Notes under the pieces: model-generated
The model's database searches: none
What the model was told of the DNA's origin: nothing
Seen by the model: only the letters and a program-made list of their open reading frames with translations
Program-made: the position numbers and the translations under genes
Source of the DNA: Podarcis vaucheri
Taxonomy: Eukaryota
Direction: 5' to 3' (one strand)
DNA length: 64,000 nucleotides
NCBI GenBank assembly: GCA_965113315.1
Contig: OZ220375.1
In this document: positions 12,090 to 38,967 of the stretch, piece after piece
Layout of the letters: every line of letters starts with the position of its first letter
How positions within the stretch are numbered: the first letter of the stretch is position 1

Positions 12090-12469
12090 CAAGGATATGT
12101 CACATACAGAGATTCTAAAAGCAAGGGTGGGAAAACTTCTTCAGCCCAACAGCCAAATTCACTTTTGGGCAGCACTCTAGAGGCCGTGTGCCAATGATGG
12201 GTGGGGCCAGAAGCAAAAGCAGGTGGAGCAATAGAGGAGCTGAGTACCTTTGTGCCACAGACTGCATTTCAGACACAAAGAAGGTTCTACACCATCCCAT
12301 GCAAATGCTTCTCTTCGTCCAGGCAAGAAGAGCCATTTTCACAGTTCAAGGACACATTTCAGCCAGGCAAAAGCACCCAAGGAGAGAGTGTCACAGGGCC
12401 AGTGAGGGCTGTGTACTGGGGAGAGTCCCAAGAGCCACATTTGGTACATTGAGCACAAGTTCTCCACCA

Positions 12470-13136: not shown

Positions 13137-13210
13137 TCTCTATGTGGAGTGGGGGTCAAAATTAAAAACTGGGTTTACACCATGCACTGGACCCCATATA
13201 GTGTATTAAT

Positions 13211-14830: not shown

Positions 14831-15781
14831 CTAGAGGCGTTTATGAACAATGACCCTCTTCAAAGCCCCTTTCACCTCCCTATTTCTGAGACTGTAGATC
14901 AAGGGGTTCAACATGGGGGTAATCACCCCATACAACATGCTCACCATCCTGTCCTGGTCTGGATGGTGGCTGGAGGAAGGCCTTAAGTAAGTGAAGAGGA
15001 TTGTCCCATAGAAGAGGCACACCACAATTAGATGGGAGACACAAGTGGAGAAGGCCTTGCGTTTCCCATCGGAAGAACGGATCCTAAGGATGGCAGAGAT
15101 GATGTGGATGTAGGAGACCAGCATCACCATAAAAGCCCCCACACCCAAAATCCCACCAACAATGAAGACTACCATCTCAGCCACATAGGTGGAAGCACAT
15201 GATAAGGCCAAGACTGGAGGGATGTCACAGTAGTATTGATTGACTCTATTGGATGTACAGAAAGGTAGAGTGAAAGTCATTACCGTGTGCAGCAAGGAGT
15301 GGAGGAACTCTGTGACCCATGTACCAGCAGCCATCTGAAGACAAAGCTTCTTGCTCATGATGACCGTGTATCGCAGAGGGTTGCATATGGCCACATAGCG
15401 GTCATAAGCCATGGCAGCTAAGAGGAAGACCTCTGTCCCTGCCAAGGCTACCAGGAAGTAGAGCTGCAGCACACAACCAACAAAGGAAATGGTATTTCTC
15501 TCTGACAAGAGGTTCTCCAGCATCTTGGGTACTGTAACTGTGGGGCAGCAGATGTCCAGCAGGGAAAGATTAGTGAGGAAGAAATACATGGGGTTGTGCA
15601 GGTGGGAGTCAGCTTCTATTGCAAGAAGAATGGTGCCGTTCCCCAGCAGGGTGACCAGGTAGATGAGCAAAAAGGCAGCCAAGAGGGAGAAGCGGACAGC
15701 TGGGAGATCAGAAAGGCCCATTAGGATGAATTCTGTCACCACGGTGGTGTTCTCCATTTCTCCCCTGTGCGAGGAGCTTTC
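14831..15781 (-). CDS. OR5V1-like olfactory receptor paralog A, main coding exon (internal ATG 15757)
   Basis: All OR motifs in an open frame. Acceptor ctcttgcag at 15783-15782 is 24 nt upstream of the ATG and in frame. Confidence 0.93.
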   Translation of the reverse strand, partial: ESSSHRGEMENTTVVTEFILMGLSDLPAVRFSLLAAFLLIYLVTLLGNGTILLAIEADSHLHNPMYFFLTNLSLLDICCPTVTVPKMLENLLSERNTISFVGCVLQLYFLVALAGTEVFLLAAMAYDRYVAICNPLRYTVIMSKKLCLQMAAGTWVTEFLHSLLHTVMTFTLPFCTSNRVNQYYCDIPPVLALSCASTYVAEMVVFIVGGILGVGAFMVMLVSYIHIISAILRIRSSDGKRKAFSTCVSHLIVVCLFYGTILFTYLRPSSSHHPDQDRMVSMLYGVITPMLNPLIYSLRNREVKGALKRVIVHKRL

Positions 15782-16019
15782 CTGCAAGAGTTTGAAAGCA
15801 AAAATGTGACATAGTAAACATCTTGGAGGCTACAGGCATACACAAGTTAAGGCCTTCTTTGCTTTTCATATAGCTTTGAGTCATACTAAGCAGGAATTTG
15901 AGGTCCCTGCTCAGACACTTTATCACTCCTAGTGATAAAGTTCCTAGCAATCACATTCATGCCCTGTACCTGAATTTCCTAGAGACCAATGTTTGACCTA
16001 TGTGAGAAACACAATGCTT

Positions 16020-16137
16020 AATAATAATAATAATTTTTTATTTATACCCTGCCCTTCCTGGTTCAAAAACCGGGCTCAGGGCAGCCTACAACAAATTTAA
16101 AACACTTAATTGTAAAAGCAGCATAAAATACAGTATA
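16020..16137 (-). mobile_element. Short L2-type 3' end with (TAA)n tail, absent from the paralogous site
   Basis: Paralog B at 20841-20870 reads acacaatgcttaattagatgg without the insert. Confidence 0.65.
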
Positions 16138-17102
16138 TAGATGGTTCTTAGATCAGATCATCTGACAAAGTCATTTTTAGGTCTTTAAATTGCTGAGACT
16201 CGTCAGAGCTTCTTTGTGCATTACATGTAAGTGGTGATAATGTCAATGGCCAGCACCCAGTGTGGAGCTGGAACCCGTGTAGTGTAGCTACGGGGCTTGA
16301 TGGGGGCGTTGTTAAGTAACTGAGGGTCTCATGGACCCTGCCACAATGCCACACCACCTATCATGGTAAACAGATTTCCATGGGGTGGGAATGGGAAGCA
16401 AGGGGAATGGCAAGGGGGTGATCAAGAAAAGTGAGTGGGGACAAAAGCCATAGTTGAGCAAATTTGTGCCCTCTTTTTAGAGCAGGAGGTCCAATTTGAA
16501 TGCAGTATTATTGTCTCAGAAAATCCTGTCCACATCTGTCAGTTCATGTGAATGTCCTCCCTCATTCTATCTGGTGCCTCTCATGAGATGAAGACTTTGT
16601 GGCTTCACCCTCAGCCTGATTTATTCATCCTCCCCTTCCCTGCCTGTGTTCTATCTAGCCTGATGAAACGTTCTGAAGAACTCATTACATTGTGGGTGAC
16701 TTGATAAAATATTGCCCTCGTATGGATTTACAAATGTATTTATACCACTCTCATCTAAACTATTTTTCTGTTCATCTGAGCATCCCTTCTAGAGAGCGCT
16801 CCTTTTTTTTTTAGGAAGAAATGTGCCAGTAATCACTATGAAGTTGTTACAGTAAGTGCCACACATTGCGAGGGGGGAGGAAGGTCCCAGTACTGTGTAC
16901 CTTTGACTATACCCAGAAAAGAGCACTGCTTCTAGAACATTCAGTGTACCACTCTCATTCCATGTACACTTGCTTCATTTTATGAGTCTCATTTCTTTGC
17001 ACTTCTACATTTAGAAACATCACTCTTTCCGTCTTCCCTAAGCCTTGATCTTTGTCACAACGATAGTCTCATTAAGCTAGTATCTACTGTAATAATACTC
17101 AC

Positions 17103-17126
17103 TGTCAATGACTGGTGCGTTACCAT
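17103..17126 (-). CDS. Predicted upstream coding segment of paralog A (MVTHQSLT, phase 0)
   Basis: ggagaa ATG GTA ACG CAC CAG TCA TTG ACA | GTGAGT. Conserved in all four paralogs. Confidence 0.72.
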
Positions 17127-18159
17127 TTCTCCAAACAGTCACTCTTCAGAATGCCTCTCATCCGCCTTGAGATCAAGGAAGGATTGTCCATTCCTCTGGC
17201 AGCTCAAACTTCTCCTTTCAACCTCAACAGGAGCTCAAGGGAATAGCAGGCCTCAGAGCACATAAGCAATGTCAGGAAACATCTCTGTTCACCACCTATG
17301 GCCAATGTCAAGACCAAGAGTAATGGCTGATTTCCCAGCACAATAAACTGCAGGGCTGTGAATAATTGTCATTCAAGATATCACTCCCTAGATGTTAAGG
17401 AAATCAGGCCAATATTTTATGTACGCCAGTTCACCAGAGTAAGGAACTGTTCTAGTCCAGTGTTTACACAAAGCTCAGTAGTTTAAGGGACTAGGTCCTT
17501 TTTGGTGGGCTTTGCTCATACCTCATGCATACCCACCAACACCTTGAAGACAAAATCCGGGATACCATCTTCCCAGACACCATCTTCCTGTTAGTTATCG
17601 TGAGACTATGGTGGCCATTTTGGTTGCTGTGATCTTGTGGAATTCCACACCATGGTTCCCCCCCCAAAAAAAGTGCTTTTTCTGGGCACGGCACCTAAAA
17701 AATGGTGTTTTGGGGTGCCATGCAAGATCGGGACCTACATCTTTCCACTGTGGTGGTGGTGTTGTTGTTCAAACCAGTGGGAGGAGCACAGCAAAGCAGG
17801 GGCAGGACTTGGGCTGGATGTATTTTTGGATAACTTTCCTCAGACCCCATTCTTCTCCTCTTGAAACAAGAGGTCCCCAACCTCCAAGGTGACTTCCATT
17901 CCAAGATACTTGTAATCTGTGCAGTGTTTAAAGTGTTTTTAAAATTGTTGGGAGGGGGGGTCAGTTCTGAGTGACACCAGCAGGGAACGGGAGCTAAGAA
18001 GATCTGATTTGTTTCAGTTTTGCGTATAGTTTGGTAGCGACACTGCTAAGTAAAGTTTCCTCCTTATCTACTCACTGTGGATCATTTGTAATCTTGCGAA
18101 TGCTACAGTGCCAGAGCAGGTCACACTTTTTCTGTGAGTGGAATGGAAATAGTAAGAGA

Positions 18160-18335
18160 GTTCAACCATGGAACAGTCGCCCACAGAAGGTTGTGAACTC
18201 TCCTTCCTTGGAGGTTTTCAAGCAGAGGTTGGATGGCCATCTGTCATGGATGCTTTAGCAGAGATTTCTGCACTGCAGGGGGTTGGACTAGATGACCCTC
18301 AGGGTCCCTTCCAACTCCATAATTCCATGATTCTA
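18160..18335 (+). mobile_element. CR1 LINE 3' end
   Basis: tccttccttggaggttttcaagcagaggttggatggccatctg...ggggttggactagatgaccc...(ATTCTATG)-like tail. Confidence 0.8.
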
Positions 18336-19214
18336 TACACTGGAGTGGGGAAGTGATTAAAAACTCTAGTAATTTATATCAGAAAACTTGTGGCCAGCTT
18401 GCATTTCCTGGGGTTGGAAATGGAGTGGGTTTCCCCCCTAGAAGTTGAAAAGTGATAAATGAAGAGGGGAAAGTTGAAGAGACGTTCATGTTCACAGATC
18501 AGAAGTAAGAAACACAACTATAAAAAAGTGGTGTGGCAGATTTTATTGACAGTGAAACTGGATTACACAACACATCTCAACATGTTAGATCAAAAGTCCA
18601 AACAGATAATTAATAGTGGCATCTATTTATGTTTGTCATTCCGCTAACATTTCAGTGTGAAGAATTAAGATTACATATGTGATTCCATGTTTCTATGATT
18701 TATTTACTTCATTTTTATGGCACCCATCCGTTTCAAGGCAATATACACAAAACCACACAGACACACTTTACCCCCACAATAATCCTGTGAGGTAAATTGA
18801 ATTGTGTGATTGGCTCAGTGGGGACTTTGAAAGTGGATTTTCCTGGACCTCATCTGAAACTCAAACTGTGATATCATGCTTAGATATAGCAGAGTTGGAT
18901 GGCAGCCTGAGGGTCATCTGGTTCAACAACCTCTCCTGTAATTCGGGAATCTCAAAGCACCCATGGCAAATGGTCACCCTGTTGTTGTTTAGTTGTGTCT
19001 GACTTTTCATGACCCCATGGACCAGAGCACGCCAGGCACTCCTGTCTTTAGGTTATATTAATTAAAATATCTGCACAGTGCAGGGATAGACAACTTGCTG
19101 CCGAACCCTCCAGATATTTTAGACTCCAACTCCCATCATCCTCTACTACTGGCCTGGCTGAATGGGACTGATAGGAGTTGTAGTCCAAAACCATGTTTTG
19201 GACCCTGATATCTC

Positions 19215-19470
19215 TTACCATCAGGAACATCTTCTTGACAATTAGTTTGACAGTCCTATCTTGTAATTTGAATCCATTTGTTTGGGTCCTACCATCTGGA
19301 GAAGGAGGAAGCAAGCTTCCTCCATCTTCCATGTGACAGCCCTTTAGATAATTAAATATAGCTTTCATGTCTTCTCAGTCTTCTCTTTTCCAGGCTAAAC
19401 ATAGGAGACGGAGAGGATAGCTATCTTCAAATATCTAAAGGGCTGACACGTAGAAGATGGAGCAAACTCA
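19215..19470. mobile_element. CR1 ORF2 fragments in opposite orientations
   Basis: Minus ORF KAIFNYLKGCHMEDG...TNGFKLQ, followed by a plus-strand atagctatcttcaaatatctaaagggctg piece. Confidence 0.65.
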
Positions 19471-19631
19471 TGTCAGGTGACAACTTCAAAGCAGGTCATT
19501 GTCAGCTGATCAATCGTAATTTAAAACATATTAAATTATGCTCTTCTTTTTCAGAGATTGGGTTATTTTGGTAGATAATGATATAGGATAGGATAATTGT
19601 ATCTTAGCCATATATTCCCCCCCTTCCAAAT

Positions 19632-20582
19632 TTATTGGCGTTTATTAATAATGACCCTCTTCAAAGCCCCTTTCACCTCCTTGTTCCTGAGGCTGTAGAT
19701 CAAGGGGTTCAACATGGGCGTAATTACCCCATACAACATGCTCACCAGCCTGTCTTGATCTGGATGGTGGCTGGAGGAAGGCCTTATGTAAGTGAAGATA
19801 GTCGTCCCATAGAAGAGGCACACCACCATAAGATGAGAGGCACAAGTGGAGAAGGCCTTGCGCTTCCCCTCGGAAGAACGGATCCTAAGGATGGTGGAGA
19901 TGATGTAGATGTAGGAGACCAGCGTCACCAGAAAAGCCCCCACACCAAAAATCCCACCAACAATGAGGACAACCATCTCAGCCGCATAGGTGGAAGCACA
20001 TGATAAGGCCAAGACTGGAGGGATGTCACAGTAGTATTGATTGACTCTATTAGATTTACAATAAGGTAGAGTGAAAGTCATGACTGTGTGCAGCAAGGAG
20101 TTGAGGAACCCTGTGACCCATGTACCAGCAGCCATCTGAAGACACAGCTTCTTGCTCATGATGACCGTGTATCGCAGAGGGTTGCATATGGCCACATAGC
20201 GGTCATAAGCCATGGCAGCTAAGAGGAAGACCTCTGTCCCTGCCAAGGCTACCAGGAAGTAGAGCTGCAGCACACAACCAATAAAGGAAATGGTATTTCT
20301 CTCTGACAAGAGGTTCTCCAGCATCTTAGGCACCGTAGCTGTGGGGCAGCAGATGTCCAGCAGGGAAAGATTAGTGAGGAAGAAATACATGGGGTTGTGC
20401 AGGTGGGAGTCAGCTGCTATGGCAAGAAGAATGGTGCCGTTCCCCAGCAGGGTGACCAGGTAGATGAGCAAAAAGGCAGCAAAGAGGGAGAAGCGGACAG
20501 CTGGGAGATCAGAAAGGCCCATTAGGATGAATTCTGTCACCACGGTGATGTTCTCCATTTCTCCCCTGTGCAAGGAGCTTGC
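19632..20582 (-). CDS. OR5V1-like olfactory receptor paralog B, main coding exon (internal ATG 20558)
   Basis: Intact OR motifs. Acceptor ctcttgcag at 20584-20583 is in frame. Confidence 0.94.
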   Translation of the reverse strand, partial: ASSLHRGEMENITVVTEFILMGLSDLPAVRFSLFAAFLLIYLVTLLGNGTILLAIAADSHLHNPMYFFLTNLSLLDICCPTATVPKMLENLLSERNTISFIGCVLQLYFLVALAGTEVFLLAAMAYDRYVAICNPLRYTVIMSKKLCLQMAAGTWVTGFLNSLLHTVMTFTLPYCKSNRVNQYYCDIPPVLALSCASTYAAEMVVLIVGGIFGVGAFLVTLVSYIYIISTILRIRSSEGKRKAFSTCASHLMVVCLFYGTTIFTYIRPSSSHHPDQDRLVSMLYGVITPMLNPLIYSLRNKEVKGALKRVIINKRQ

Positions 20583-21041
20583 CTGCAAGAGTTGCAAAGC
20601 AAAAATGTGACATAGTAAACATGTTGGAGGATACGGGCATACACTTTTGCTTTTCAAGGTGTTGCTTTGCTTCTTTGCTTTTCAAGGTGTTAGGCATATA
20701 GCCTTGAGTCATACTAAGCAGGAATTTGAGGTCCCTGCTTAGACACTTTATCACTCTGAGAAGCAAAGATTAGTTCCTAGCGATCACATTCATGCCCTGT
20801 ACCTGAATTTTCCAGAGACCAATGTTTTGCCCGTGTGAGAAACACAATGCTTAATTAGATGGTTCTTAGATCAGATCATCTGACAAAGTCATTTTTAGGT
20901 CTTTAAATTACTGAGACTTGTCAGAACCTCTTTGTGTGTTGCATGTAAGTGGTGATATTGTCAATGGCCAGCAATATTGTCAATGGCTTGACAGGGAGTT
21001 GTTAACTAACTGCAGGGAACATGGAGACTGATAGTTTTATA

Positions 21042-21271
21042 TACAGTGGTATCTCGGGTTAAGTACTTAATTCGTTCCAGAGGTCCGTTCTTAACCTGAA
21101 ACTATTCTTTACCTGAAGCACCACTTTAGCTAATGGGGCCTCCCACTGCTGCCGCGCCGCTGCCACGTGATTTCTGTTCTCATCCTGAAGCAAAGTTCTT
21201 AACCTGAGGTACTATTTCTGGGTTAGTGGAGTCTGTAACCTGAAGCGTGTGTAACCCAAGGTACCACTGTA
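21042..21271. mobile_element. Tc1/mariner (Tigger-like) MITE
   Basis: TA-CAGTGGTA...TACCACTG-TA. Confidence 0.85.
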
Positions 21272-21722
21272 CTCACTGCTAGATCCTCTTCCTCCTGGTC
21301 AATTGCTGATTCATTATTTACGGCTGGATTTTCTCACATTCTCCCTTGTGCCTGTCACCACATGCAGACTTTATTGTTCCACCATGAGCCTGATTTATTT
21401 GTCCTTTCCCTGCCATTGTTATTACCTGATGAAAAGCTCTGAAGAACTCAAAAGCCTCCACATCATTTCATAACATTTTGGTTGGCCTGATCATAGTATT
21501 GCCCTTATACGGATTTTCATCTCATCTAAACCATATTTTTATTCATCTCAGCATCCCTTCTAGAACATTTTGTGTACTGCTCCTGTTCCATGTACACCTG
21601 TCTTGATATATGAGTCTCATTTCGTCAAACTTATAAAATTACCAAACATATCTTTTCCTGTCTTACTTAAGACTTTAAGTCACAAGGATGGCCCCATTAA
21701 GCTTGTATCTTCTAATACTCAC

Positions 21723-21746
21723 GGTCAGTGATTGGTGCGTTTCCAT
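21723..21746 (-). CDS. Predicted upstream coding segment of paralog B (METHQSLT, phase 0)
   Basis: ggtgaa ATG GAA ACG CAC CAA TCA CTG ACC | GTGAGT. Confidence 0.72.
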
Positions 21747-22649
21747 TTCACCAAACAGTCGCTCTTAAGAATGTCTCTCATCTGCCTTGAAATCAAGGAA
21801 TGATTGTGTGTTCCTCCGGCAGCTCAGCCTTCTCCTTTAAGTCTCGCCATAAGGAGCTCAAGGGAATAGCAGGCCTCAGAGCACACCAGCAGTGCCAAGA
21901 AGCATCTCTTTGCCTACCATGACCAATGTCAAAAGAAAAAGTGATGGGTGATTTTCCAGCATAATAAGCTCCAGTCCTGTGAATTATTGTCCAACTCTAC
22001 ATTTCCATTATTATGATTTTTTGAATACATGACTCCCTAGAATGTTAAGGAAGTCCAGCCCATGTTTTATGTGCTCCATTTCACCTGAGGATGGAACAGA
22101 TCTTCTCTAGGTTCTACACAAAACTCAGGAGAATAGCAGCCAGGCAGGAGCTGTGACTATGCTTAAGTGACCTTAGCTTTCAATGGCGAGAGAACAAATT
22201 CCATGTAACAGAAAATAAGCAAGACCTGAGTAGAGAGATCATTTTCTGAACCTCCTGCCTAGAATCCCTTAGTCATGTGGGGGTGGCAGTAGTATTCAAT
22301 GGGGTAGTATTCAATGGGAGATTTTGTATGCGAGCTGGAACTGGTCTGTGACCGAAATAATAAATTCATTCATTCAATGGGGGTAGGCACTTTGCATATG
22401 CTCAGAGCCACCTTCTTTCTTACATCCCAGTATAAGTCATGGCTGAATCCAGGCACTAAGAGCAAGCATGAAGACTCAAACCAAGGAAGACTGTCCATAA
22501 AAATGTCTATAATTGATGGTACTCAGTGACCTCCAGGATGAAGCCCAAGCCCCATAGTGATGCCTGCAAATATTGATATTGAAATTTAACTATGGCCATA
22601 CACACTTCTCTCCTCCGAAAATGGGACCATGCAATTCTTTCCTACTCCT

Positions 22650-22666
22650 TAATGAGTCCCAAAGAG
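22650..22666 (+). promoter_or_regulatory. Candidate homeodomain + O/E (EBF) composite site
   Basis: TAATGA-G-TCCCAAAGAG. Degenerate copies at 24828-24844 and 25329-25344 lie in a thrice-repeated noncoding module. Confidence 0.35.
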
Positions 22667-23463
22667 CATTGTTAACATCTATGGTGCAGTCTCCATCTCA
22701 TCTGCTACCACAGAGCTCCTACCAGAAAGGTCCTCAGATAAATGCTCTGCATCCATGGTGATGTAAAAATAATGCCACCAAGAGTAATTATGATGTCATC
22801 CGAACTGAATGGATTTGAAGTCACAGGGATTAGCACACATAAGGCCAATTTGGGAGACGCTATGCACCATCCCTAGTGCTTCCTGCTCAATGACATGGTT
22901 GCCCTGTGTGGGGCCTCCACCATGTCAGATTTCAACTCTAGAAGGAACTCTCCTCTACAGGAGACAATTTCTTCCATATAGAAAACTAGATGCAAGAGAG
23001 AACAGGTGTTTTGTCTTCCATCTGAAATGGCAGGAATCATCCCTGTAGGACTTTCTCACTCTCTCTCTCTCTCTCTCTCCCCTGCGATAAAAAAAATGAT
23101 AAATTCCAGTGATGTGGATTTAAAACTTCAGTTGCAACTAGGCCCAAATTAGGTCTGAAATACTAGGGGATTGTTTGTTTTGTTTATTTAGGAAAGCATT
23201 TATATATTGTCAGTTAGTACAACAGAACATGGCTGTGTACAACAATGTATACGATAAAATCTAAAACACCATAAAAGCCATAAATAATGCTCATTATAGC
23301 AACTGCATTAAACAGTTACGTAGGCCTGTCTACATAAAAAAGTGTTGGCAGAGTTAGTAGATATTGAATGCTTTATTAATTATCCCTGCTACCAACATGT
23401 GTTTTCCACAGGAGTTTTAGAAATCATCGTATGGAGGGAATCAGTTCTGAGTGACACCAGCAG

Positions 23464-23798
23464 TGTCGAGTAACGGCTCGGCATCCGAAGAAATCAGTCT
23501 CACACCATGATGGGTTCCGAAATATTGCTGCTCCTCAGGGCTACTGCAGCACAGCTTTTATTGTGTGAAATCAGAAAGATACAAAATACAAGCGAAGCAA
23601 TTTGTTCTCAGCCAGCAGATAAGGACCTTCGCACTAGACCATGCGAACATCAGGCCATGCTACGTTAACCAATCATGTGGGACAGCACGAGCTATTCACG
23701 CGCTGTTCATGCTCCAAGGATGCTTCTAGCTATGAAATCACCCTTCAATAATAAGAACTTTGCTCATGCTCTCATGTGCAAGCAATCATTTTCCCACA
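23464..23798 (-). mobile_element. Solo LTR (335 bp, TG...CA, 6-bp TSD CAGCAG)
   Basis: TSD at 23458-23463 and 23799-23804. Empty paralogous site at 17971-17990. AATAAA on the minus strand at ~23557-23562. Confidence 0.85.
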
Positions 23799-24389
23799 CA
23801 GCAGGGAAAGCGAGCTAAGAGCATCTTGCTAGTTTCAGATTGGCATATTGTTTGGCAGCAGCACACTGCTTTGTGAAGTTTCCTCCTCCCAATCTACTCT
23901 CTGTGGATCATTTGTAATCTTGCAAATACTTGTTTTTCAGTGTGTCGAGTGTACATGCAATATACCTGAGTGGGGAGGTGATATTTGAAAACTCTGGTAA
24001 TTTGCATTGAAAGACTTGCATTTCTTGGGTATGAAAATGAAGTGAGTGGATTCCCCCCCTAGGTGCTGAAAAGTGGTTAATGAAGAGTGGAAACTTGAAG
24101 AGAAGTTCATGTTCGTAGAAGTAAGAAACACAACTATTTAAAAAAAAACCCACAATGGTGTGACAAGAGTTTATTGACAGTGATACTGGATTACACAGCA
24201 CATCTCTTTACATGTTAGAAGAAAAGCCCAAAGAGATAATTGATAGTGGAATCTATATAAGTTTGCCATTGCTCTAACATTTCAGCTGTGGGGGGAAATG
24301 AGATTACCTATTTATTTATATTTACCTATTTATTTACTTCATTTTCACTCCACCTCAAGGTATGTACAAGACTAGACACACACAAAAAA

Positions 24390-24625
24390 AATTTGTTTGT
24401 TTAGTCATGTCCGACACTTCATGACCCCATGGACCAGAGCACGCCAGGCACTCCTGTCTTCCACTGCCTCCCGCAGTTTGGTCAAACTCATGCTGGTAGC
24501 TTCGAGAACACTATCTTGTCCTCTGTCGTCCCCTTCTCCTTGTGCCCTCCATCTTTCCCAACATCAGGGTCTTTTCCAGGGAGTCTTCTCTTCTCATGAG
24601 GTGGCCAAAGTATTGGAGCCTCAGG
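24390..24625 (-). mobile_element. BovB (RTE) LINE 3' fragment
   Basis: The minus strand encodes LRLQYFGHLMRREDSLEKTLMLGKMEG plus the BovB 3' UTR. Smaller pieces at ~18980-19048 and ~50725-50805. Confidence 0.85.
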
Positions 24626-26853
24626 GCCCATTAACTCACCAAGAAACTTGTCTGGCTCCTTCAAAAATGGTACCCCCCCCAACTCACAACAGTATGTTAA
24701 CACTATGTTAAGATTGCATTATGTTAAGAAAACTAGAGGGACATCATGCTCCCTGCAGATATTGATATAAAAATGAAGCTTTATTCCTCTCCTTCCAAAT
24801 ATGACCATGCAAGTGTTTTTCCCTCCCAAATGAGTCCCACAGAGCATCGTTAAGTGTAATGAAGATGATGGAATCACCTGCAATTCCTCTGATATCAGGG
24901 GGGCACCTCAGATGAACACCCAACATGGGTGGTGCTGTATGAATAAGAATACCAACAGCAATTATGGCGACACCTGAAGTCAGTGGCTTATTCAGTTATG
25001 TGGGGATGGCAGGATTAACCAAGCAATGGGAGGAGATACTTTGCATATGCTCGGAAACAACTTTATTGTATCCCAAAGTAAGTCATCACTGAGTCTAAGC
25101 ACTAAGAACAAGATTGAGGAATCACACATGTGGAGCCTACATTTTGGAAGGCTTACCATTAAAATGTCTATAATTGACGGTACTTGGTGACCTCCAAGAC
25201 AAAGCCCATAGAGGTTATTAAACCACAGGGAGATCATGCTCCTTGTAGGTATTGATGTTAAAATATAGCAACGGACATACACATTTCTCTCATCCCAAAA
25301 TGGGACCATGCAAGTGTTTTCACCTGCTTCATGAGTCCCACAGGTCATTGCTCACAATAATGGTGTAGTCTCCATCTCATCTACCAACACAGAGCTCCCT
25401 CCAAAAAGGTCCTCAGAAGATGTATAAAAATAATTATGGTTTCGTCCAAAGTCCATGGCTTTAATGTCCCTAGAACATCCAAACAGCACACATGGGGCCA
25501 AGCAAGAACACTCTCCTCATCATCCCTAGTACTTTCTGCTCACAGAAGTGGTTACTCTGTGTGTGGACTCTACCACATCAAATTTCAACACTTGAAAGGA
25601 AAGCTCCTGTACAGAAAACAATCTCCCCCATATGGAGGGGAAGAGAGGGAGAAGAGAGATGTTTAGTCTTCCATCTGACATGGCAAGAATCATATGTGTA
25701 GCAATCTTTTCTCCCACTTGCCATCAAAAATAGTAAATCCCAGAATGACCGCTCCCCATCTCAAATGGGGGGCGCTTTTTGCGGGGTTGCGTGCAGCCCC
25801 TTGATCCTACACGATCCCCGGCAATGTAGCCTGTCTTCGCCTCAGATCTACATTTTCAATTGGAACAAACACAGAGCTGAAATAATAGGTTCTCAAAGTT
25901 TCACAAGGTTTCTTGCCTTAACCCTTGCTGTTAATCCAATCTACAAATCTCTAATACTCAGTACAAACAAACAAGCGCATTCCTGCAAATAAAGAAGTGT
26001 CAAAACAGGGACTGGGCCGTGCTGCAACCCCTTTTCCCTGATGTAGGGATAGGTGAATCAGTCAGTGTCAGTTTATCTTCGATTCTCATTTCTCCAATCT
26101 TAAAATCAGGATTCCAGTCCACACAGGAGCCCTCACTTGAACAATACACCATCTTGGCAGTATCCTTTTCCATCATATCTTCTTCAGCCTGGCTCTATGA
26201 CCTCCTGGTGGGTCTTCTCTGTCATGTAAACTCTAGCAAACTGGTTCTCATAATTTTTTCTCTGGGCCACACTTTCAGAATAAAAATTACTTCACACCAC
26301 ACTGAATTGTTCATTGATAAGAAATACACTGGAAAGGGAAAAGGAACAACTAGCAGTGCTTGATTTATAACATAGAACACAACTACTTCATAATATGCTC
26401 ATGGGACATCCAGAAAGTATTAAACAATGCAGCTACATAAGACCATGAACTATCCCGAAAATATAGTATTGACCGTCCTTGGATCTTCCTGCCACACTTG
26501 GCATCCTCTCCTACCATACCAGTGTGGCGTGCCACATCCTTTGACTCATAAGATATGTGGAAAAATAAACCTATAACTGAAGCGACCAGAGGCACAAGGA
26601 GAACCAAGAATAAAAGTCTCCATATTACATCAAGCAAAATGTTCAACCAATTCGAAGTTACTTATCCCAAATGTCTGGAGAGAGTTTTACATTTTCTTTT
26701 TTACGTATTCTTATTTTATGTATACAATAAAATCCCGCAAAATTGAGACAAAATGTTACCTTTGTTTTCCCTTTCAAAAAATATGTAGACTACACTTCCT
26801 TGGCTCAGAATTCCTTATGTGTCTCTTTTAATCTAACAGAGAAATACAAATAA

Positions 26854-27822
26854 CTAAGACACACATTCCCTCTTTAAGCACATATGAACTATCACCCTCT
26901 TCAAGGTCACCTTTACTTCCTTATTCCTAAGGCTGTAGATCAAGGGATTCAACATGGAGGTAATCACCCCAGATAGCATGCTCACCATCCTGTCCCGGTC
27001 TGGATGGCGGCTGTTGAGAGGCCTAATGTAAGTGAAAATCATGGTACCATAGAAGAGGAGCACGACAATTACATGGGAGGCACAAGTGGAGAAGGCCTTG
27101 CGTTTCCCCTCAGCAGAACGGATCCTAAGGATGGTGGAGATGATGTAGATGTAAGAGACCAGTGTCACAAAGAAAGCCCCCACACCCAAAAACCCACCAA
27201 CAATAAGGACCAACAATTCAGCTGTGTAAGTAGAAGCGCACGATAATGCCTGCACTGGTGCGATGTCACAGTAGTATTGATTGACTTTATTGGATCTGCA
27301 GAAAGGTAGAGTGAACGTCATTACTGTGTGCAGAAGGGAGTTGAGGAACCCTGTGACCCAGGTAACCGCTGCCAGCTGAAGACAAAGCTTCTTACTCATG
27401 ATAACTGTGTATCGTAGAGGGTTGCATATGGCCACATAGCGGTCATAGGCCATGGCAGACAAGAGGTAGACCTCTGTCCCTACCAGTGCCACCAGGAAGT
27501 AGAGTTGTAGCACACAGCCAGCAAAGGAAATGGTATTGATCTCTAACAAGAAGTTCTCCAGCATCTTGGGCACTGTAGCTGTCGGGAAGCAGATGTCCAG
27601 CAAGGAAAGGTGGCTGAGGAAGAAATACATGGGGGTGTGCAAGTGAGAGCTAATTCCTATGGCAAGAAGAATTGTGCCATTTCCTACCAGTGTAATCAGG
27701 TAGATGAGCAAAATGGCAGCAAACAGGGAGAAGCGAACCGCAGGGAGATTAGAAATTCCCATAAGGATGAATTGTGTCACTAGCGTGCCATTCCCAATTT
27801 CTCTGTTCAGAAAGGAGATTTC
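26854..27822 (-). CDS. OR5V1-like olfactory receptor paralog C, main coding exon (no canonical ATG; ATT at 27798-27796)
   Basis: Open OR frame from the acceptor ctcttccag (27824-27823): EISFLNREIGNGTLVTQF... Confidence 0.88.
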   Translation of the reverse strand, partial: EISFLNREIGNGTLVTQFILMGISNLPAVRFSLFAAILLIYLITLVGNGTILLAIGISSHLHTPMYFFLSHLSLLDICFPTATVPKMLENFLLEINTISFAGCVLQLYFLVALVGTEVYLLSAMAYDRYVAICNPLRYTVIMSKKLCLQLAAVTWVTGFLNSLLHTVMTFTLPFCRSNKVNQYYCDIAPVQALSCASTYTAELLVLIVGGFLGVGAFFVTLVSYIYIISTILRIRSAEGKRKAFSTCASHVIVVLLFYGTMIFTYIRPLNSRHPDRDRMVSMLSGVITSMLNPLIYSLRNKEVKVTLKRVIVHMCLKRECVS

Positions 27823-28333
27823 CTGGAAGAGTTTGAAAGCATAAGAGAAACATAAAGCATGTTGAAGGCCTTTTGGGGCTCTTTGAAATCTCCTTTGGTT
27901 TTAATGGCCCTGGACAATTTTGTATCATCAACAAATCTGGCCACCTGACTCCTCATCACTTAGGAACAAGATTAAAAGCACAGGTCCCAATACCTTGGGG
28001 GAACTCTTTCTAAATCTCTCCAGTTGGAGAAGTGTCCCTTTATTCCTCTGCTTCTTTCTAACATAGCCAATTCCTAATCCGCAAGAGTGTTTGCCACCTA
28101 GCCAGCTGAAGCCTTCTGGAGAACTCAAACATTTGCTTACCATTTCCTAATATTTTGTTGGGCCTAATACAGTCTTTACTCGAATGTGGGTTTTTGAATT
28201 TTTCTGTGAGAACGCTCATCTAAGACATCTTCCTATTCACCTGAACATCCTTTCCAGAACATTCCATATATCACTCCCATTCCATAGATCATTTCTATTG
28301 AGGAGCCTTGCTCCTTCTATCTGTACTAGCTAA

Positions 28334-28633
28334 GGGCTTATCTACACTTACCTTTCCTCTGCTCTTTCCAACCACAGTCTGCATTCTAAATCTCCATGTC
28401 CAAGCACCGTGCTGTTGTTGTTGCAGAGCAGTGCCTGCGAAAAGCCACTCTCTAAAGCTCAGTAGGAGCAAACAGCAATCTGTGGAGAACCCGAATTGAT
28501 GTTTGCTCCGATTGAGTGCTAAAGAGCATATTTTTGTGGGGAAAACTTCGAGGCAAAAAATGGAGGATATGGAGCTTTTAAGTGGGGACCTGTACCTGGA
28601 AAGAGTGCAGCAAAAGATGAGTGTAATTAACCC
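28334..28633. mobile_element. Inverted-repeat MITE (GGGCTTATCTACAC termini; PIF/Harbinger-like, tentative)
   Basis: Ends gggcttatctacact and agtgtaattaaccc. An equivalent copy sits in paralog D at ~34669-34960, with a relative at 38968-39251. Confidence 0.5.
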
Positions 28634-28718
28634 TTTTAAACATTATGTGTTCCCAGCTTCCTTCATCCTTGACCTTAATCATAACAATACCCCCATTAAA
28701 CTAATAGCTAATACACAC

Positions 28719-28736
28719 TTGCAATGACTGGCGCAT
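28719..28736 (-). CDS. Predicted upstream coding segment of paralog C (MRQSLQ, phase 0)
   Basis: gtgaat ATG CGC CAG TCA TTG CAA | GTGTGT. Confidence 0.68.
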
Positions 28737-29230
28737 ATTCACACTTAATAATGCCTCTCATCCGGCTTGAGATCAAGGAAGAGTCTGTTCCTCCAGCAGC
28801 CCAGCCTTTCCCTTTAAGTCCCAGCATAAGCAGCACAAGGGAATAGCAGGCGCCAGAGCTCTGCCTCAGTGCCAGCAAACATCTCTTTATGTCTCCAATG
28901 ACCAATGATAAGGCAAAAAGGTGTCCTTGATTTCCCAGCACAATAAACTGCAGCCCTGTGGATAATATTCATTCAAGAAGCTGCTCCCTGTAATATTAAG
29001 AGAATGCAATCTATGTTTTATGTCTTCCAATTTACCAAAGTTTGAAACGGTTCTGGTCCAGGCATTCTGCCCTTAGCAGGGGGGCCAACCTGATCAATTC
29101 CCCCCCACACACACACACACAGTTCAGCTACTTCCCTCTTCCCTTAAAGAGCCACATCTGGGGAGTCTTACAATAAGCCCAGTCTATGTATTCTGAGTCC
29201 CTCTGAACAAGTGTCTATACTGTTTCTTAT

Positions 29231-29878
29231 AGGGACGCGAGTGGCGCTGTGGTCTAAACCACTGAGCCTCTTGGGCTTGCTGATCAGAAGGTCAGCGGTG
29301 GTTTGAATCCCCGTAACGGGGTGAGCTCCCATTGCTCTGTCCCAGCTCCTGCCAACCTAGCAGTTCGAAAGCACTCCAGTGCAAGTAGATAAATAGGTAC
29401 TGCTGTGAGAGCCAGTGTGGTGTAGTGGTTAAGAGCAGTGGACTCGTAATCTGGTGAGCCGGGTTTGCTTCCCCGCTCCTCCACATGCAGCTGCTGGGTG
29501 ACCTTGGGCCAGTCACACTTCTCTGAAGTCTCTCAGCCTCACTCACCTCACAGAGTGTTTGTTGTGGGGGAGGAAGGGAAAGGAGATTGTTAGTCGCTTT
29601 GAGACTCCTTAGGGTAGTGATAAAGCAGGATATCAAATCCAAACTCTTCTTCTTCTTCCATGGTGAGAAGGTAAACAGTGTTTCTGTGTGCTCTGGTTTC
29701 TGTCACAGTGTTCTGTTGCACCAGGAGAGGCTTAGTCATGCTGGCCACATGACCTGGAAAGCTGTCTATGGACAAACGCCAATTGCCTCAGCCTGAAAGT
29801 GAGATGAGCACCGCAACCCCATGGATGCCTTTGACTGGACTTAACTGTCCAGGGTTCCTTTACCTGTAGCTTTTTTTG
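29231..29878 (+). mobile_element. Sauria SINE interrupted by a Squam3 SINE
   Basis: TSD ctgtttcttat at 29220-29230 and 29879-29889. Colinear with the 13211 copy apart from the insert. Confidence 0.85.
29407..29658 (+). mobile_element. Squam3-type tRNA-derived SINE
   Basis: Head gagagccagtgtggtgtagtggttaagagc (A/B-box-like) and (CTT)n tail. A reverse copy is at 58577-59282. Confidence 0.75.
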
Positions 29879-30384
29879 CTGTTTCTTATTGAACCAATTC
29901 TTATAGAACCAGTTTAAACAAAGACATAGCTTAGCAGATCTCAAGTACATCCAGCAGAGTTGAAATAGATAAGAGTTTTTAATATATAACAAATTGAATG
30001 ATTAAAAAGATGTGGATTACGTGGAGTAGTAGAAAACCAAAGGAACCAGGAAAAGGGTGGAAGGGAAGTCATATTCAGGTTTTCATGGATTTACCTGGGG
30101 AAAGCAGCGAGGCAAAGGGGGAAAAGGTGTTTGGACTCTACTTACAGAATAAGAGAGCAAGAAGAAAATGCATTTAAAGAAGACTGGGACGTGTTTATTG
30201 AGTATATGGAAAATAAGTGTGTACAGCTGAAAATGCTGGCAGTGTTAAGATAAATTCAGCAGAGTAAATAAATCTTGATGGATGTAATAGTGGAAAATTG
30301 ATTTGAATGGTTAATGTAAAATCTGCAGGGATGTAAGATATGTAAAATGAACCATGGAAAGAGAAGAAATGAAGTTATTGGATA

Positions 30385-31685
30385 TTTTATTTTATTTTTA
30401 TAATGTTTTTATTCAGTTTTTTCAACTTACATTTATATTCAAATAGTAAGCATAATCATAAACATATAGGATTTCCTGAATCCTTGCACTTCCCTCCCCC
30501 CACTCCATGGATTCCATTGTCAATCTTTTTCAACTGCATTCCATTTTTACCATAGTTCTTGTTAGATTACAAGTGTTGTTACAATCCTGCCAAAGTTTTT
30601 AGTTGTTTACAGTGTTCTCCAAGGTAACTAATAAATGTTTCCCATACTTGTTAAAGTTTCTGTTTTCTAATTTTCTCATTTTCTCATTTTCGCCATTTTG
30701 GCGTAGTTCATCATCTTTATCAACCATTCTTCTCTGGTCACGACTTTAACTTCTTTTCATCTCTGGGCCAAAAGTATCCACGTTGCTGTCATTGCATACA
30801 CGAATAATCTTTTCTGTTCTTTTGATATTTCTGCACCTAAAATTCCTAGTAAAAAAAGCTTCTGGTTTTTTTTCACAAAAGTTATTTTAAACATTTTTTT
30901 TCAATTCATTGTATATCATTTCTCAGAATGCTTTCGTTATTTTGCACATTCACCACATATAGAAGAAGGTGCCTTCTTCCTCCTTATATTTTCAACAGAT
31001 ATTTGAAGAATTTCTATACATTTTTGTTAGTTTAGTAGGTGTTAGATACCAATGATACATCATTTTCATATAGTTTTCCTTCAACATACAGCATGCTGTA
31101 AATTTTAAATCTTCCCTCCATAACTTTTCCCAAGATGAAAATTGTATATTATGCCCAATATCTTTTGCCCATTGTAGCATTACTGATTTAACTTCTTCAT
31201 CTTTAGTATACCATTCTAGCAGCAGCTTATACATTTTTGAAAGTAACTTCACATTATTTTCCAGTAAATCTTTTTCAAACCTTGAAATTTCCTTATTAAA
31301 TCCATTCCTTTTATCCATGTTAAATATATCATTTAATTGGTGGTATTGTAACCTATCAGTTACTAAGTGTCTTATATCCTCATTTTTTTTTCTTTTTAAG
31401 TGTTGCTCTACTTCTGTTAACAGCTCTTTATAGGTTGCCCATTCATTTTTTGCATTTAACTTTCAAGGATATAACTTCCAGTGGGAAGAGCCACCATCTT
31501 GTAGTTTTTTTATAATATTTTGTTGATAAACCATCTGACCCTGGTGATTTACCTAATTTTGTTTGGTTAATTACCTGTTGCAGTTCCATTGTTGTTATTG
31601 GTGCATTTACATCATTAATTTTCTCTTTAGGAAATTTTGGTACATTATTCTGCTTTAAATATTCCACAATTCTGTCCTTATTTTC
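30385..31685 (-). mobile_element. L1-clade LINE ORF2 fragment, degraded; tail-to-tail with a + strand L1 3' piece at ~29950-30380
   Basis: ORFs 31443..31667 (NAPITTMEL...KSPGSDG) and 30992..31318 (WEKLW...ENYMKMMYHWYLTP). Confidence 0.8.
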
Positions 31686-32573
31686 TTTACCGGCTAAATA
31701 TAGCTCTGTGTAATGTCTTACAAACTGTCTTCAAAGAGAAGTCATTGGATATTTTAAAATTTGTAAAACATTTATTTGAAAATAGTGGCTGAGGGTGTGG
31801 TTGGTTGTCTTTGGTTGGCTTTAGTGAGAACATGTATTTTTGAATCATGTTAGCCAGATTGATTCGTATGCTGTTGGCGGATTGTCGTTGTTCTCTTGTT
31901 GGGCTGTGTATGTGATAAAGGGGAACCAAACCTGGGTGAAGGCGTTTTCCTCTATTTGTCCCTGTGTCAGTTTCGGTTTCTCAAACTTCTTTTCTCTGGG
32001 CCACACTTTCAGAATAAAAATTACCTCACACCACACTGAATTGTTTATTGATGAGTAATACATTGGAAAAGGGAAAGGAAAAACTCCCAGCAGTGCTTGA
32101 TTTATAACACAGAACACAACTACTTCATAATATGCTCATGGGACATCCAGAAAGTATTAAGCAATGCAGCTACATAAGACCATGAACCATTCCCAAAACA
32201 TAATACTCAGTGTCCTTGGATATTCTTGCCACACTTGTCATCCTCTACTGCCACACCAGTGTGGCACGCCACATCCTTTGACTCACAAGATATGCAGAAA
32301 CATAGACCTTTAACTGAAATGACCAGAGCCACGAGGAGAACCAAGAATAAAAGTCTCCCTATTACATCAAGCAAATTCCTGGTGTCTAGAGAGACTGATG
32401 GGGGAGAGAGAGTTTTACAATTTTTTTCTTTTTGGTATTCAAAAAAATCTCAGGAAACTGAGGCAAAGGGTTACCTGTGTTTTCCCTTTCAAAAATTGGA
32501 TATACTGTACTACTTTTCCTTGGCTCAGAATTACTTATGCGCTCATTCCACCTTAACTGAGAAATACAAATAA

Positions 32574-33542
32574 CTAAGCCACACATTTGCTCTTTAAGCA
32601 TTTATGAACTATTACCCTCTTCAAAGCCCCTTTCACCTCCTTATTTCTGAGACTGTAGATCAAGGGGTTCAACATGGGCGCAATTACCCCATAGAGCATG
32701 CTCACCATCCTGTCCTGGTCTGGATGGTGGCTGGAGGAAGGCCTTAAGTAAGTGAAGAGGATTGTCCCATAGAAGAGGCACACCACAATTAGATGAGAGG
32801 CACAAGTGGAGAAGGCCTTGCGTTTCCCCTCAGCAGAACGTATCCTAAGGATGGTGGAGATGATATGGATGTAGGAGACCAGCGTCACCATAAAAGCCCC
32901 CACACCCAAAATCCCACCAACAATGAAGACAACCATCTCAGCCACATAGGTGGAAGCACATGATAAGGCCAAGACTGGAGGGATGTCACAGTAGTATTGA
33001 TTGACTCTATTGGATCTGCAGAAAGGTAGAGTGAAAGTCAACACCGTGTGTAGAAGGGAGTTGAGGAACCCTGTGACCCATGTACCAGCAGCCATCTGAA
33101 GACAAAGCTTCTTGCTCATGATGACCGTGTATCGCAGAGGGTTGCATATGGCCACATAGCGGTCATAGGCCATGACAGCCAAGAGGAAGACCTCTGTCCC
33201 TGCCAAGGCTATCAGGAAGTAGACTTGCAGCACACACCCAACAAAGGAAATGGTATTTCTCTCTGACAAGAGGTTCTCTAGCATCTTGGGCATTGTAGCT
33301 GTGGGGCAGCAGATGTCCAGCAGGGAAAGGTTGCTGAGGAAGAAATACATGGGGTTGTGCAAATGAGAGTCAGCTGCTATGGCAAGCAAGATAGCACCAT
33401 TTCCTATCAGGGTCACCAGGTAGATGAGCAAAAAGGCAGCAAAGAGGGAGAAGCGGACAGCTGGGAGATCAGAAAGTCCGGTTAGGATAAATTCTGTCAC
33501 TAGGGTGCCATTCCCTATTTCACCATTCAGAAAGGAGCTTTC
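32574..33542 (-). CDS. OR5V1-like olfactory receptor paralog D, main coding exon (no canonical ATG; ATA at 33518-33516)
   Basis: Open OR frame from the acceptor ctcttccag (33544-33543): ESSFLNGEIGNGTLVTEF... The next in-frame ATG comes only after TM1. Confidence 0.88.
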   Translation of the reverse strand, partial: ESSFLNGEIGNGTLVTEFILTGLSDLPAVRFSLFAAFLLIYLVTLIGNGAILLAIAADSHLHNPMYFFLSNLSLLDICCPTATMPKMLENLLSERNTISFVGCVLQVYFLIALAGTEVFLLAVMAYDRYVAICNPLRYTVIMSKKLCLQMAAGTWVTGFLNSLLHTVLTFTLPFCRSNRVNQYYCDIPPVLALSCASTYVAEMVVFIVGGILGVGAFMVTLVSYIHIISTILRIRSAEGKRKAFSTCASHLIVVCLFYGTILFTYLRPSSSHHPDQDRMVSMLYGVIAPMLNPLIYSLRNKEVKGALKRVIVHKCLKSKCVA

Positions 33543-33902
33543 CTGGAAGAGTTTGGAAGCATAAGAGACACATGAAACATGTTGAATGCTGCAGACATAG
33601 TAGGGATTGAGATGAGCTCCAAGAGGATCTCTCCAAATCAGGATTGTGAGAAATTAAATGGGAAAGTACAATTCAATGTAAGAGAATGTGAAGGGATCCA
33701 CACTGGGGCAAACGATCCAATATTCACATTTACCTCAATGGGGTTTGGACACTGGGTCAGCATCTTTACTGAGCCATCAATTTACAACCCCAAGGTCTCT
33801 TTCCTGGTCATCCACTGGAAGTTGTGACCCCATATGTAAATATGTGAGCTTAAGGTTTATTCATTTTTTATTTTGCACCAACATGCATCACTTGTTTACA
33901 TT

Positions 33903-34148
33903 TACAGTGGTACCTTGGGTTACATACACTTCAGGTTACATACGCTTCAGGTTACAGACTCCGCTAACCCAGAAATAGTACCTCGGGTTAAGAACTTTGC
34001 TTCAGGATGAGAACAGAAATTGTGCTCCAGCGGTGTGGCGGCAGCAGGAGGCCCAATAAGCTAAAGTGGTGCTTCAGATTAAGAACAGTTTGAGGTTAAG
34101 AACGGACCTCCGGAACGAATTAAGTACTTAACCCGAGGTACCACTGTA
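33903..34148. mobile_element. Tc1/mariner (Tigger-like) MITE
   Basis: TA-CAGTGGTACCT...AGGTACCACTG-TA. Confidence 0.85.
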
Positions 34149-35024
34149 ATTGTATTTCCCATTTTATTTCACTCGGTTTGAGTAGGTCCTTCGGAGCTCT
34201 TTGCAATCACTTTTTTTTTTTAATGGCACTGAACAATTAGTATCATTAACAAACTTGGCCACCTCAATTCTCACACCTGACACCTCATCACTTAGGAACA
34301 AGATTAAAAGCACAGGTCCCAATACCGAACCTTGGGGGACTCCACTTTCTGAAACTCTCCAGTAGGAGAAGTGTCCGTTTAATCCTTTGCTTTCTTCTAT
34401 TTAACCAATTCCTGATCTGCAAGAGTGTTTACCACCTAGCCAGCTGAAGCATTCTGGAGAACTCAAAGATTTGCTTTCCATTCCATAACGTTTTGTTTGG
34501 CCTAATAAAGCCTTTGTTCTAAACAGGATTTTTGAATTTTTCTGTGAGAATTCTCATCTAAGGCATCTTTCTATTCACCTGAACATCCTTTCCAGAACAT
34601 TCCATGTACCACTCCCATACCATATAACCTTGCCATTGAGGAGCCTTGCTCCTCTCTGTACTAGCTAAGGGCTTATCTACACTCACCTTTCCTCCGCTCT
34701 TTCCAGTCACGGTTCCCACTTTAGAGTTTCACGTCCAATCATCTTTTTTTAATTATTATTCCAGAGCTTTGCCTGTGAAAGCCAACTCTCTAAAGCTCAG
34801 TAGGAGCAAACAGCAATCTGTGGAGAACCCAAATTGATGTTTGCTCCGATTGAGCACTGAAGAATAGGTTTCCACAGGGAAACTCTGAAGCAAAAAAAAC
34901 CCTCCGCAGCTTTTAAGCACTGGCCTGTGCCTGGAAAGAGTGGAGCAATATGCAAGTGTTCCCCGCTTCCTGCATCCTTGAGCTTCATCATAACAGCCCC
35001 ATTAAGCCAATAGCTAATACACAC

Positions 35025-35048
35025 TTGCAATGACTGGCGCATATTCAT
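35025..35048 (-). CDS. Predicted upstream coding segment of paralog D (MNMRQSLQ, phase 0)
   Basis: ggagga ATG AAT ATG CGC CAG TCA TTG CAA | GTGTGT. Confidence 0.7.
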
Positions 35049-35539
35049 TCCTCCAAAGGTCTCACTTAAGAATGCCTCTCTTGAGATCAAGGAAGAGTCT
35101 ATTCCTCCAGCAGCCCAGCCTTTCACTTTAAGTCCCAGCATGAGGAGCACAAGGGAATAGCAGGTGACGGAGCTCTGCCTCAGTGCCAGCAAACATCTCT
35201 TTTTGTCTCCAATGACCAATGATAAGACAAAAAGGTGTGCTTGATTTCCCAGCACAATAAGCTGCAGCCCTAGGAAAATTATTCATTCCAGAAGCTGCTC
35301 CCTGTAATGTTAAGGGAATGCAGTCTGTGTTTTATGTATTCAAGTTCACCAAAGTCAGAAGCAGTTCTGGTCCACATTTCCCCCCCCCCAAAAGGGGGGG
35401 GAGTTCAGGAGCTGTAAAGACTAGTCCTTCAGGTGGTTGAAGAGAGATTTTTTTTGTAGGCTTTTATCATGTCTTGTGTGCAGAGGCGTACCTAGGCTCC
35501 CTTGCACCCTTCACAAGGACCTGTATTGGGGCCTCTGAA

Positions 35540-38863: not shown

Positions 38864-38967
38864 GGACCGCAACAGAGAATGACTCAGCTGCAGAAGATCG
38901 GAGACATAGATGGGGAAAGCTAGCCAGTCGCAAATGATCTACAGTTCTCTTCCCATTGCTTAGCACA

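Follow-up and report, generated by a model that had tools for sequence, protein, structure and literature searches.

Four tandem olfactory receptor genes of a wall lizard probably have a coding sequence that is split over two exons. The genes lie on the minus strand of a 64,000-nucleotide (nt) stretch of Podarcis vaucheri contig OZ220375.1 (GenBank assembly GCA_965113315.1), referred to below as the window, and are numbered 1 to 4 in the order of their coordinates; each encodes an OR5V1-like receptor whose long open frame would receive its start codon and a few further codons from an upstream mini-exon. The most informative point for this arrangement comes from genes 3 and 4, two intact genes in which ATT and ATA, respectively, occupy the position of the usual initiator methionine. 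From the sequence, we infer an upstream transcription start, the use of the splice donors described below, and translation initiation at the ATG of the first exon.

Identity of the receptor genes

The long open frames of genes 1 to 4 end at positions 14831, 19632, 26854, and 32574 and run for 316 to 322 codons without a single stop. Genes 1 to 3 match the Pfam 7tm_4 profile (PF13853) over its full length (profile positions 1 to 280 or 3 to 278), at 190 to 201 bits against a cutoff of 27 bits and with an E value of 3.7e-58 for gene 1. Gene 4 matches the same profile in two pieces, of 62.7 and 96.1 bits, that flank positions 33134 to 33189; the codons of this segment were left out of the calculation of nonsynonymous-to-synonymous substitution rate ratios (dN/dS) and were masked with X in the tree. 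All four translations show the motifs typical of the family, MAYDRY following helix 3, KAFSTC preceding helix 6, and NPxIY within helix 7, as well as an N-x-T glycosylation site after the usual Met position.

The nearest public proteins, at 88 to 96% identity, are annotated as "olfactory receptor 5V1-like" and come from Podarcis raffonei, Podarcis muralis, Podarcis lilfordi, Lacerta, and Zootoca. A protein search returned squamate OR5V1-like proteins at 79 to 96% identity and mammalian ones at 70 to 75%, while within the set of proteins used for the tree the receptor core reached up to 99% identity to lacertid proteins; in the tree itself, all four genes fell inside the lacertid clade. Gene 2 shares 99% identity with a P. 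muralis protein and clusters in the tree with P. lilfordi models that carry the N-terminal extension discussed below. The four genes are tandem OR5V1-like class II olfactory receptors of a Podarcis wall lizard, where OR5V1-like refers to nearest relatives and tree grouping and makes no statement of strict orthology to human OR5V1.

Gene 4 appears to have a mixed ancestry within the cluster. The body of the receptor clusters with the gene 1 clade, with a nucleotide identity of 92% to gene 1 versus 85% to gene 3, and its first 17 exon 2 codons, its exon 1, and 1.2 kilobases (kb) of upstream sequence are gene 3-like (80% identity; 32574 to 35374 compared with 26854 to 29061 and with 14831 to 15781). 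This pattern suggests a chimera that may have arisen by unequal crossing-over or gene conversion inside the cluster.

Exon 2 and the loss of the usual start codon

In each gene, the putative intron ends in ctcttGCAG or ctcttCCAG, with pyrimidines at 15 of the 20 bases preceding the acceptor AG, so that the first bases of exon 2 are 15781, 20582, 27822, and 33542 (Table 1). Eight in-frame codons without a stop separate the acceptor from the usual Met position in all four genes. An earlier note on this stretch had described such a pyrimidine-rich CAG acceptor, in phase 0 and 24 nt ahead of the usual Met position without an intervening stop, and direct reading of the four genes bears this out.

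Genes 1 and 2 retain ATG at the usual position. In exon 2 of gene 3, no in-frame ATG occurs before codon 21, where the first membrane helix begins, and in that of gene 4 none occurs before codon 65, inside the second helix. With no usable start in exon 2, neither gene could produce a receptor without an upstream coding exon. Comparison of the coding sequences shows that genes 3 and 4 are under purifying selection rather than decaying: pairwise dN/dS was 0.20 to 0.38 for all six pairs, these two genes included. Moreover, intact orthologues of gene 3 with Ile at the Met position are present in P. muralis, P. raffonei, Lacerta agilis, and Zootoca. Since these species represent three lacertid genera, the loss of the Met is older than those genera, and the gene has nevertheless stayed intact.

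An unspliced N-terminal extension was also considered as a source of a start codon and was ruled out, as none of the four genes has an in-frame ATG in the interval from the upstream stop to the acceptor.

The putative upstream coding mini-exon

The earlier note had placed a short ATG-led segment, ending in a phase 0 GT, upstream of each receptor frame. All of its coordinates and peptides proved to be correct (Table 1), as did the purine at position -3 of the upstream ATG (G, G, A, and G in genes 1 to 4), and the intron lengths and predicted products of 324, 324, 328, and 330 amino acids (aa) follow from the coordinates and exon 2 lengths. Reading each exon separately, we found in all four genes an intact frame across the two exons, canonical GT-AG intron boundaries, and a matching phase 0. 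The four mini-exons align as one block of eight codons without gaps, in which codons 1 and 3 are GTG and ATG, respectively, in gene 3 and are both ATG in gene 4.

The presence of an ATG-to-GT segment is not significant by itself, since the 3.5 kb upstream of each gene contain 57 to 71 stop-free, phase 0 segments of this kind, 3 to 8 of which have a good-looking donor. What sets the four segments apart from such chance candidates is their homology, both among the paralogs and with sequences of other species. In the region that precedes the coding sequence, genes 1 and 2 can be aligned with genes 3 and 4 only over some 400 nt around exon 1 and some 55 nt before the acceptor, and there is no alignment at all between the two pairs in the body of the intron. 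Within the aligned region around exon 1, the 24 coding and 8 donor columns are free of gaps, whereas gaps occur in 19 of the 60 columns that precede them and in 15 of the 42 that follow, an indel pattern that shows the frame of the mini-exon to be protected. Four sites distinguish the mini-exons of genes 1 and 2, and the differences are synonymous at three of them; although this is a small number, the pattern looks suggestively like that of coding sequence. The aligned block extends upstream of the start codons and, in all four genes, may comprise the promoter and the 5' untranslated part of exon 1 (Table 1).

Two alternative readings of exon 1 were discarded. A longer frame in gene 4, starting from an ATG at 35141, was ruled out because the equivalent ATG lies in a different frame in each of the other paralogs, and a one-codon exon in gene 1 (ATG followed by GTAACG, at 17126 to 17124) was ruled out because gene 2 has no GT at that place.

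The region around the mini-exon contains two further elements. An out-of-frame ATG (cgg or cag before the ATG, a after it) at 17161, 21781, and 28761 on the minus strand is conserved in genes 1 to 3 and has been lost from gene 4 by a deletion; the frame that it opens ends, in genes 1 and 2, within exon 1, shortly past the proposed start codon. Upstream reading frames are frequent in the leaders of receptor genes (Barnes et al. 2020, BMC Genomics 21:196, PMC7055050). The conserved ATG may open an upstream frame with a regulatory role. Genes 3 and 4 share, within their introns, a block of about 68 nt (28514 to 28447 and 34852 to 34785, minus strand) with a single mismatch, compared with 80% identity around it, and no counterpart of this block was found upstream of genes 1 and 2.

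The same layout in other squamates

For other species, the evidence consists of the N termini of public protein models. An 8-residue N-terminal peptide, with M1 and Q5 kept, is joined at the same acceptor in at least 10 other squamate species. The peptide reads MQTHQSLT in P. lilfordi (CAI5791082.1), MDIHQSLP in Hemicordylus (XP_053120272.1), MATLQSFQ in Tiliqua (XP_066486502.1), MEKCQSLP in Elgaria (XP_062992987.1), and MDKQQPLR in Candoia (XP_063158573.1), and near variants of the Candoia peptide occur in Liasis, Protobothrops, Crotalus tigris, Thamnophis, and Vipera. The model structure is carried, in other words, by a skink, a cordylid, an anguid, a lacertid (another Podarcis), and six snakes, with total lengths of 323 to 325 aa, and the mini-exon of gene 1 is homologous to the N terminus of a P. 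lilfordi model. The initiation Met and the junction are thus conserved among the paralogs and, at the level of protein models, in other species. Since a model must fit its genome, those genomes carry the ATG, the eight codons, and a donor in the right phase.

Of these 10 models, only that of P. lilfordi still has the usual Met, which is replaced by Ile in Hemicordylus and Tiliqua, by Val in Elgaria, and by Thr or Pro in the snakes; the snakes also have a one-codon insertion in the segment before the Met position, which leaves the frame unbroken. Such repeated and varied replacement of the Met in intact genes is best understood if the upstream ATG was already the working start. Models from gecko, Rhineura, Anolis, Sceloporus, and Varanus begin at the usual Met, and proteins of this kind cannot reveal an upstream exon. 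The earlier note had attributed the two-exon structure to this lizard subfamily in particular. That restriction does not hold: the layout occurs in snakes as well as in skinks, cordylids, anguids, and lacertids, and RefSeq and ENA models already contain it.

Proposed structure and its weighing

On the preferred reading, exon 1 would consist of a short 5' leader, the start codon, and five to seven more codons, followed by the phase 0 GT donor. After removal of an intron of 0.9 to 1.5 kb, these codons would be joined to exon 2, which starts eight codons ahead of the ancestral Met position and holds the whole receptor, and the product would carry 14 to 16 additional residues at its extracellular N terminus, in front of the N-glycosylation site. 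Genes 3 and 4, with the ancestral Met replaced by Ile, would depend entirely on the upstream start. On transcripts of genes 1 and 2, a scanning ribosome would first encounter the ATG of exon 1 (G at -3 and G at +4), so that the long form would be expected to dominate, with the internal Met as a fallback. Of the two-exon coding sequence proposed in the earlier note for all four genes, the essential part stands, since start, frame, peptide length, and acceptor are the same in the squamate models and exon 2 of genes 3 and 4 has no start of its own; for genes 1 and 2, it has to be qualified, as the extension is optional and not needed where the usual ATG remains.

A tentative extension of this scenario, which we regard as possible but hardly probable, is that the exon 1 ATG predates the split of skinks, lacertids, anguids, iguanians, and snakes, took over initiation, and freed the ancestral Met for repeated independent decay, with an M-x-x-x-Q-S/L-L/S core that is functional at the extracellular tip, for example, in membrane insertion or surface export. 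These lineages separated well over 100 million years ago.

Several observations speak against the two-exon structure proposed here. The donors are only moderate and lack G at -1; they rank between 3rd and 13th among the 154 to 194 GT sites (3rd of 194 in 3.5 kb for gene 1), a ranking that is based on an approximate frequency table and gives a rough ordering only. In genes 1 to 3, the out-of-frame ATG mentioned above precedes the proposed start by 35, 35, and 25 nt and would cut initiation there if transcribed, and genes 1 and 2 retain the usual ATG in a good context. As for the public models, RefSeq represents the P. muralis and P. raffonei orthologues of these two genes by single-exon models of 308 aa, none of the models of gene 3 or gene 4 orthologues uses the proposed upstream exon, and the models in general are automatic predictions that may have been informed by one another.

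Alternative explanations

The public models of their orthologues offer one alternative for genes 3 and 4, namely, that these genes are split but use a different first coding exon. For gene 3, the candidate at 28384 to 28352 appears in models from P. raffonei, Zootoca, and an older P. muralis release and has the best donor of the 154 GT sites upstream of the gene; for gene 4, rival exons are present in the window with zero or one residue difference from the public peptides. However, across the groups of gene 3 and gene 4 orthologues, five different first exons, varying with species and annotation release, are joined to the same acceptor, and the newer P. muralis release has dropped the gene 3 candidate in favor of a 302-aa model. 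The ATG of that candidate is GTG at the aligned place in gene 4, its closest paralog, and 2 of the 11 residues of its peptide differ from P. raffonei, although the two receptor cores share about 99% identity. Of the gene 4 candidates, that at 33763 to 33734 lies in a stretch that is not matched by the upstream region of any other paralog and looks by eye like a fragment of a long interspersed nuclear element (LINE), and that at 34975 is followed by GC instead of GT in this window. A further candidate, at 34378, has Thr in place of Met. Upstream of genes 1 and 2, no equivalent exists for any of these exons. The first exons are inconsistent with one another, the ATG is not conserved in the nearest paralog, and the peptide encoded at 28384 has changed quickly between almost identical species; these points make the candidates look like ab initio fillers, and we consider a different first exon to be unlikely.

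By eye, the intron stretches that precede the acceptors of genes 4 and 3 (33690 to 33830 and 27870 to 27950, minus strand) resemble fragments of a LINE reverse transcriptase gene. The stretch in gene 4 supplies the ATG of the P. raffonei RefSeq model.

Exon 1 could also be a noncoding leader, in which case genes 1 and 2 would start at the usual ATG, and genes 3 and 4 would be either young pseudogenes or genes initiated at a near-cognate ATT or ATA. Most vertebrate receptor genes do carry 5' noncoding exons, and in-frame upstream ATGs are found in 14 to 22% of human and mouse receptors (PMC7055050); the out-of-frame ATG near the proposed start would fit a leader, and conservation of the block around exon 1 is equally expected of a promoter plus leader. 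Nevertheless, the Met-less gene 3 orthologues are intact in four lacertid species, and dN/dS is about 0.2 to 0.26, neither of which would be expected of a pseudogene. In at least five squamate families, moreover, the usual Met has been lost independently (to I, V, T, or P) with the frame intact and with a homologous upstream ATG each time, and a mere leader would not be expected to keep this ATG, the 8-codon length, and the phase from snakes to skinks without a frameshift. We therefore regard a noncoding exon 1 as quite improbable.

Finally, the idea that the four ATG-to-GT segments are chance features of recent tandem copies, to which the abundance of chance candidates, the close pairing of genes 1 with 2 and 3 with 4 (which leaves only about two independent observations in the window), and the 80% overall identity of the gene 3 and 4 introns, with other long identical runs, would lend some weight, is largely refuted by the alignment of the exon 1 block, but not of the intron, between the gene pairs and by the matching peptide in distant squamate families, and we give it very little credence.

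Table 1. Proposed exons, putative regulatory blocks, and alternative first exons of the four OR5V1-like genes (a slash marks the exon-intron boundary)
Feature	Position	Strand	Details
Gene 1 exon 1, coding part	17103-17126	-	8 codons, MVTHQSLT; donor ACA/GTGAGT; putative intron 17102-15782, 1321 nt
Gene 1 exon 2	14831-15781	-	316 codons + stop; usual ATG retained at 15757-15755, 24 nt past acceptor
Gene 2 exon 1, coding part	21723-21746	-	8 codons, METHQSLT; donor ACC/GTGAGT; putative intron 21722-20583, 1140 nt
Gene 2 exon 2	19632-20582	-	316 codons + stop; usual ATG retained
Gene 3 exon 1, coding part	28719-28736	-	6 codons, MRQSLQ; donor CAA/GTGTGT; putative intron 28718-27823, 896 nt
Gene 3 exon 2	26854-27822	-	322 codons + stop; ATT at usual ATG position
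Gene 4 exon 1, coding part	35025-35048	-	8 codons, MNMRQSLQ; donor CAA/GTGTGT; putative intron 35024-33543, 1482 nt
Gene 4 exon 2	32574-33542	-	322 codons + stop; ATA at usual ATG position
Conserved block upstream of gene 1 start	17127-17460	-	Aligns genes 1/2 with 3/4; putative promoter and 5' untranslated part of exon 1
Equivalent block, gene 2	about 21747-21988	-	Putative promoter/leader
Equivalent block, gene 3	about 28737-29061	-	Putative promoter/leader
Equivalent block, gene 4	about 35049-35374	-	Putative promoter/leader
Rival first coding exon, gene 3	28384-28352	-	11 codons; donor AAG/GTAAGT; RefSeq P. raffonei, Zootoca, older P. muralis release
Rival first coding exon, gene 4	33763-33734	-	10 codons; donor GAG/GTAAAT; P. 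raffonei RefSeq
Rival first coding exon, gene 4	34975-34925	-	From public models; followed by GC here
Public-model first exon located in window	34378-34331	-	Thr instead of Met here

Neighboring genes

Four further olfactory receptor frames in the window belong to other subfamilies (1121 to 2284, 8514 to 9473, and 10234 to 10728 on the plus strand and 37916 to 38872 on the minus strand). Three of the four are full length with an ordinary in-exon Met, and the one at 10234 to 10728, which spans only the second half of the olfactory profile, is probably a fragment or pseudogene. TRIM-like exons at 42909 to 43442 and 54547 to 55038, both on the minus strand, encode PRY and SPRY domains (E value, 1e-26) and a RING finger and represent one or two genes. 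Mammalian OR5V1 lies in the extended class I region of the major histocompatibility complex, a region that this combination of receptor and TRIM neighbors recalls. In addition, a 266-aa open frame at 12359 to 13159 (minus strand), in a GC-rich patch (GC content, 0.53), has no Pfam match and resembles by eye the C-terminal part of a retroelement integrase.

Implications and comparison with known split receptors

Surveys of reptile olfactory receptors look for intronless frames, and one such survey of squamates (PMC3342882) predicted intronless coding sequences by design. Such a rule leaves genes 3 and 4 without a start codon, together with their orthologues in lacertids and the main copies in snakes, skinks, cordylids, and anguids; all of these would be counted among pseudogenes or truncated genes, a bias in the tally of functional receptors. 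In addition, the locus shows the start codon passing between exons, with both states, genes 1 and 2 on the one hand and genes 3 and 4 on the other, adjacent in one cluster. For the latter two genes, whose public models are discordant between species and releases, we offer a first exon that is based on homology.

The public squamate OR5V1-like models share with the genes described here the pattern of the 8-residue first-exon peptide, the acceptor, and the total length, but they are predictions without a published description, and those of the lacertids differ in that gene 3 and gene 4 orthologues use mutually inconsistent first exons while the gene 1 and gene 2 orthologues of P. muralis and P. 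raffonei are single-exon models. In the literature searched, we found no description of split olfactory receptors in squamates. Human OR5V1 differs in having its coding sequence in a single exon in the annotation of Barnes et al. 2020. The multi-coding-exon olfactory receptors of cichlids (BMC Genomics 2014, PMC4122780) are also exceptions to the intronless coding rule, although they belong to other receptor groups.

The closest parallel is found in mammals, for which 13 human and 41 mouse receptor genes with a coding region over two exons have been listed (PMC7055050). In most of these, the intron follows residue 1 to 13; introns span 0.55 to 22 kb, and the frames encode 305 to 344 aa. The earlier note had stated that split coding sequences are known for only a minority of mammalian receptors; given this established class, the lizard layout is not new in kind. 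The curation of the mammalian list excluded loci in which a conserved downstream Met gives a full-length single-exon frame, and a strict filter of this kind would retain genes 3 and 4 (ATT and ATA) and remove genes 1 and 2. As in the lizard genes, the start codon and a few residues of the mammalian split receptors lie in an upstream exon, the intron interrupts the extracellular N terminus, and small clusters of paralogs share one common intron. The mammalian loci fall into two classes, those that lack the usual ATG and those that allow both forms, and each has its equivalent here: genes 3 and 4 correspond to the former, which would otherwise be called pseudogenes, and genes 1 and 2 correspond to the latter, which can be read in both ways. 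What differs is the lizard host and the fact that the lizard structure, known here from sequence alone, has apparently been kept over most squamate families. In summary, the four Podarcis genes have a probable two-exon coding sequence, in a layout already present in public automatic models, that would add to the known class of split olfactory receptors.

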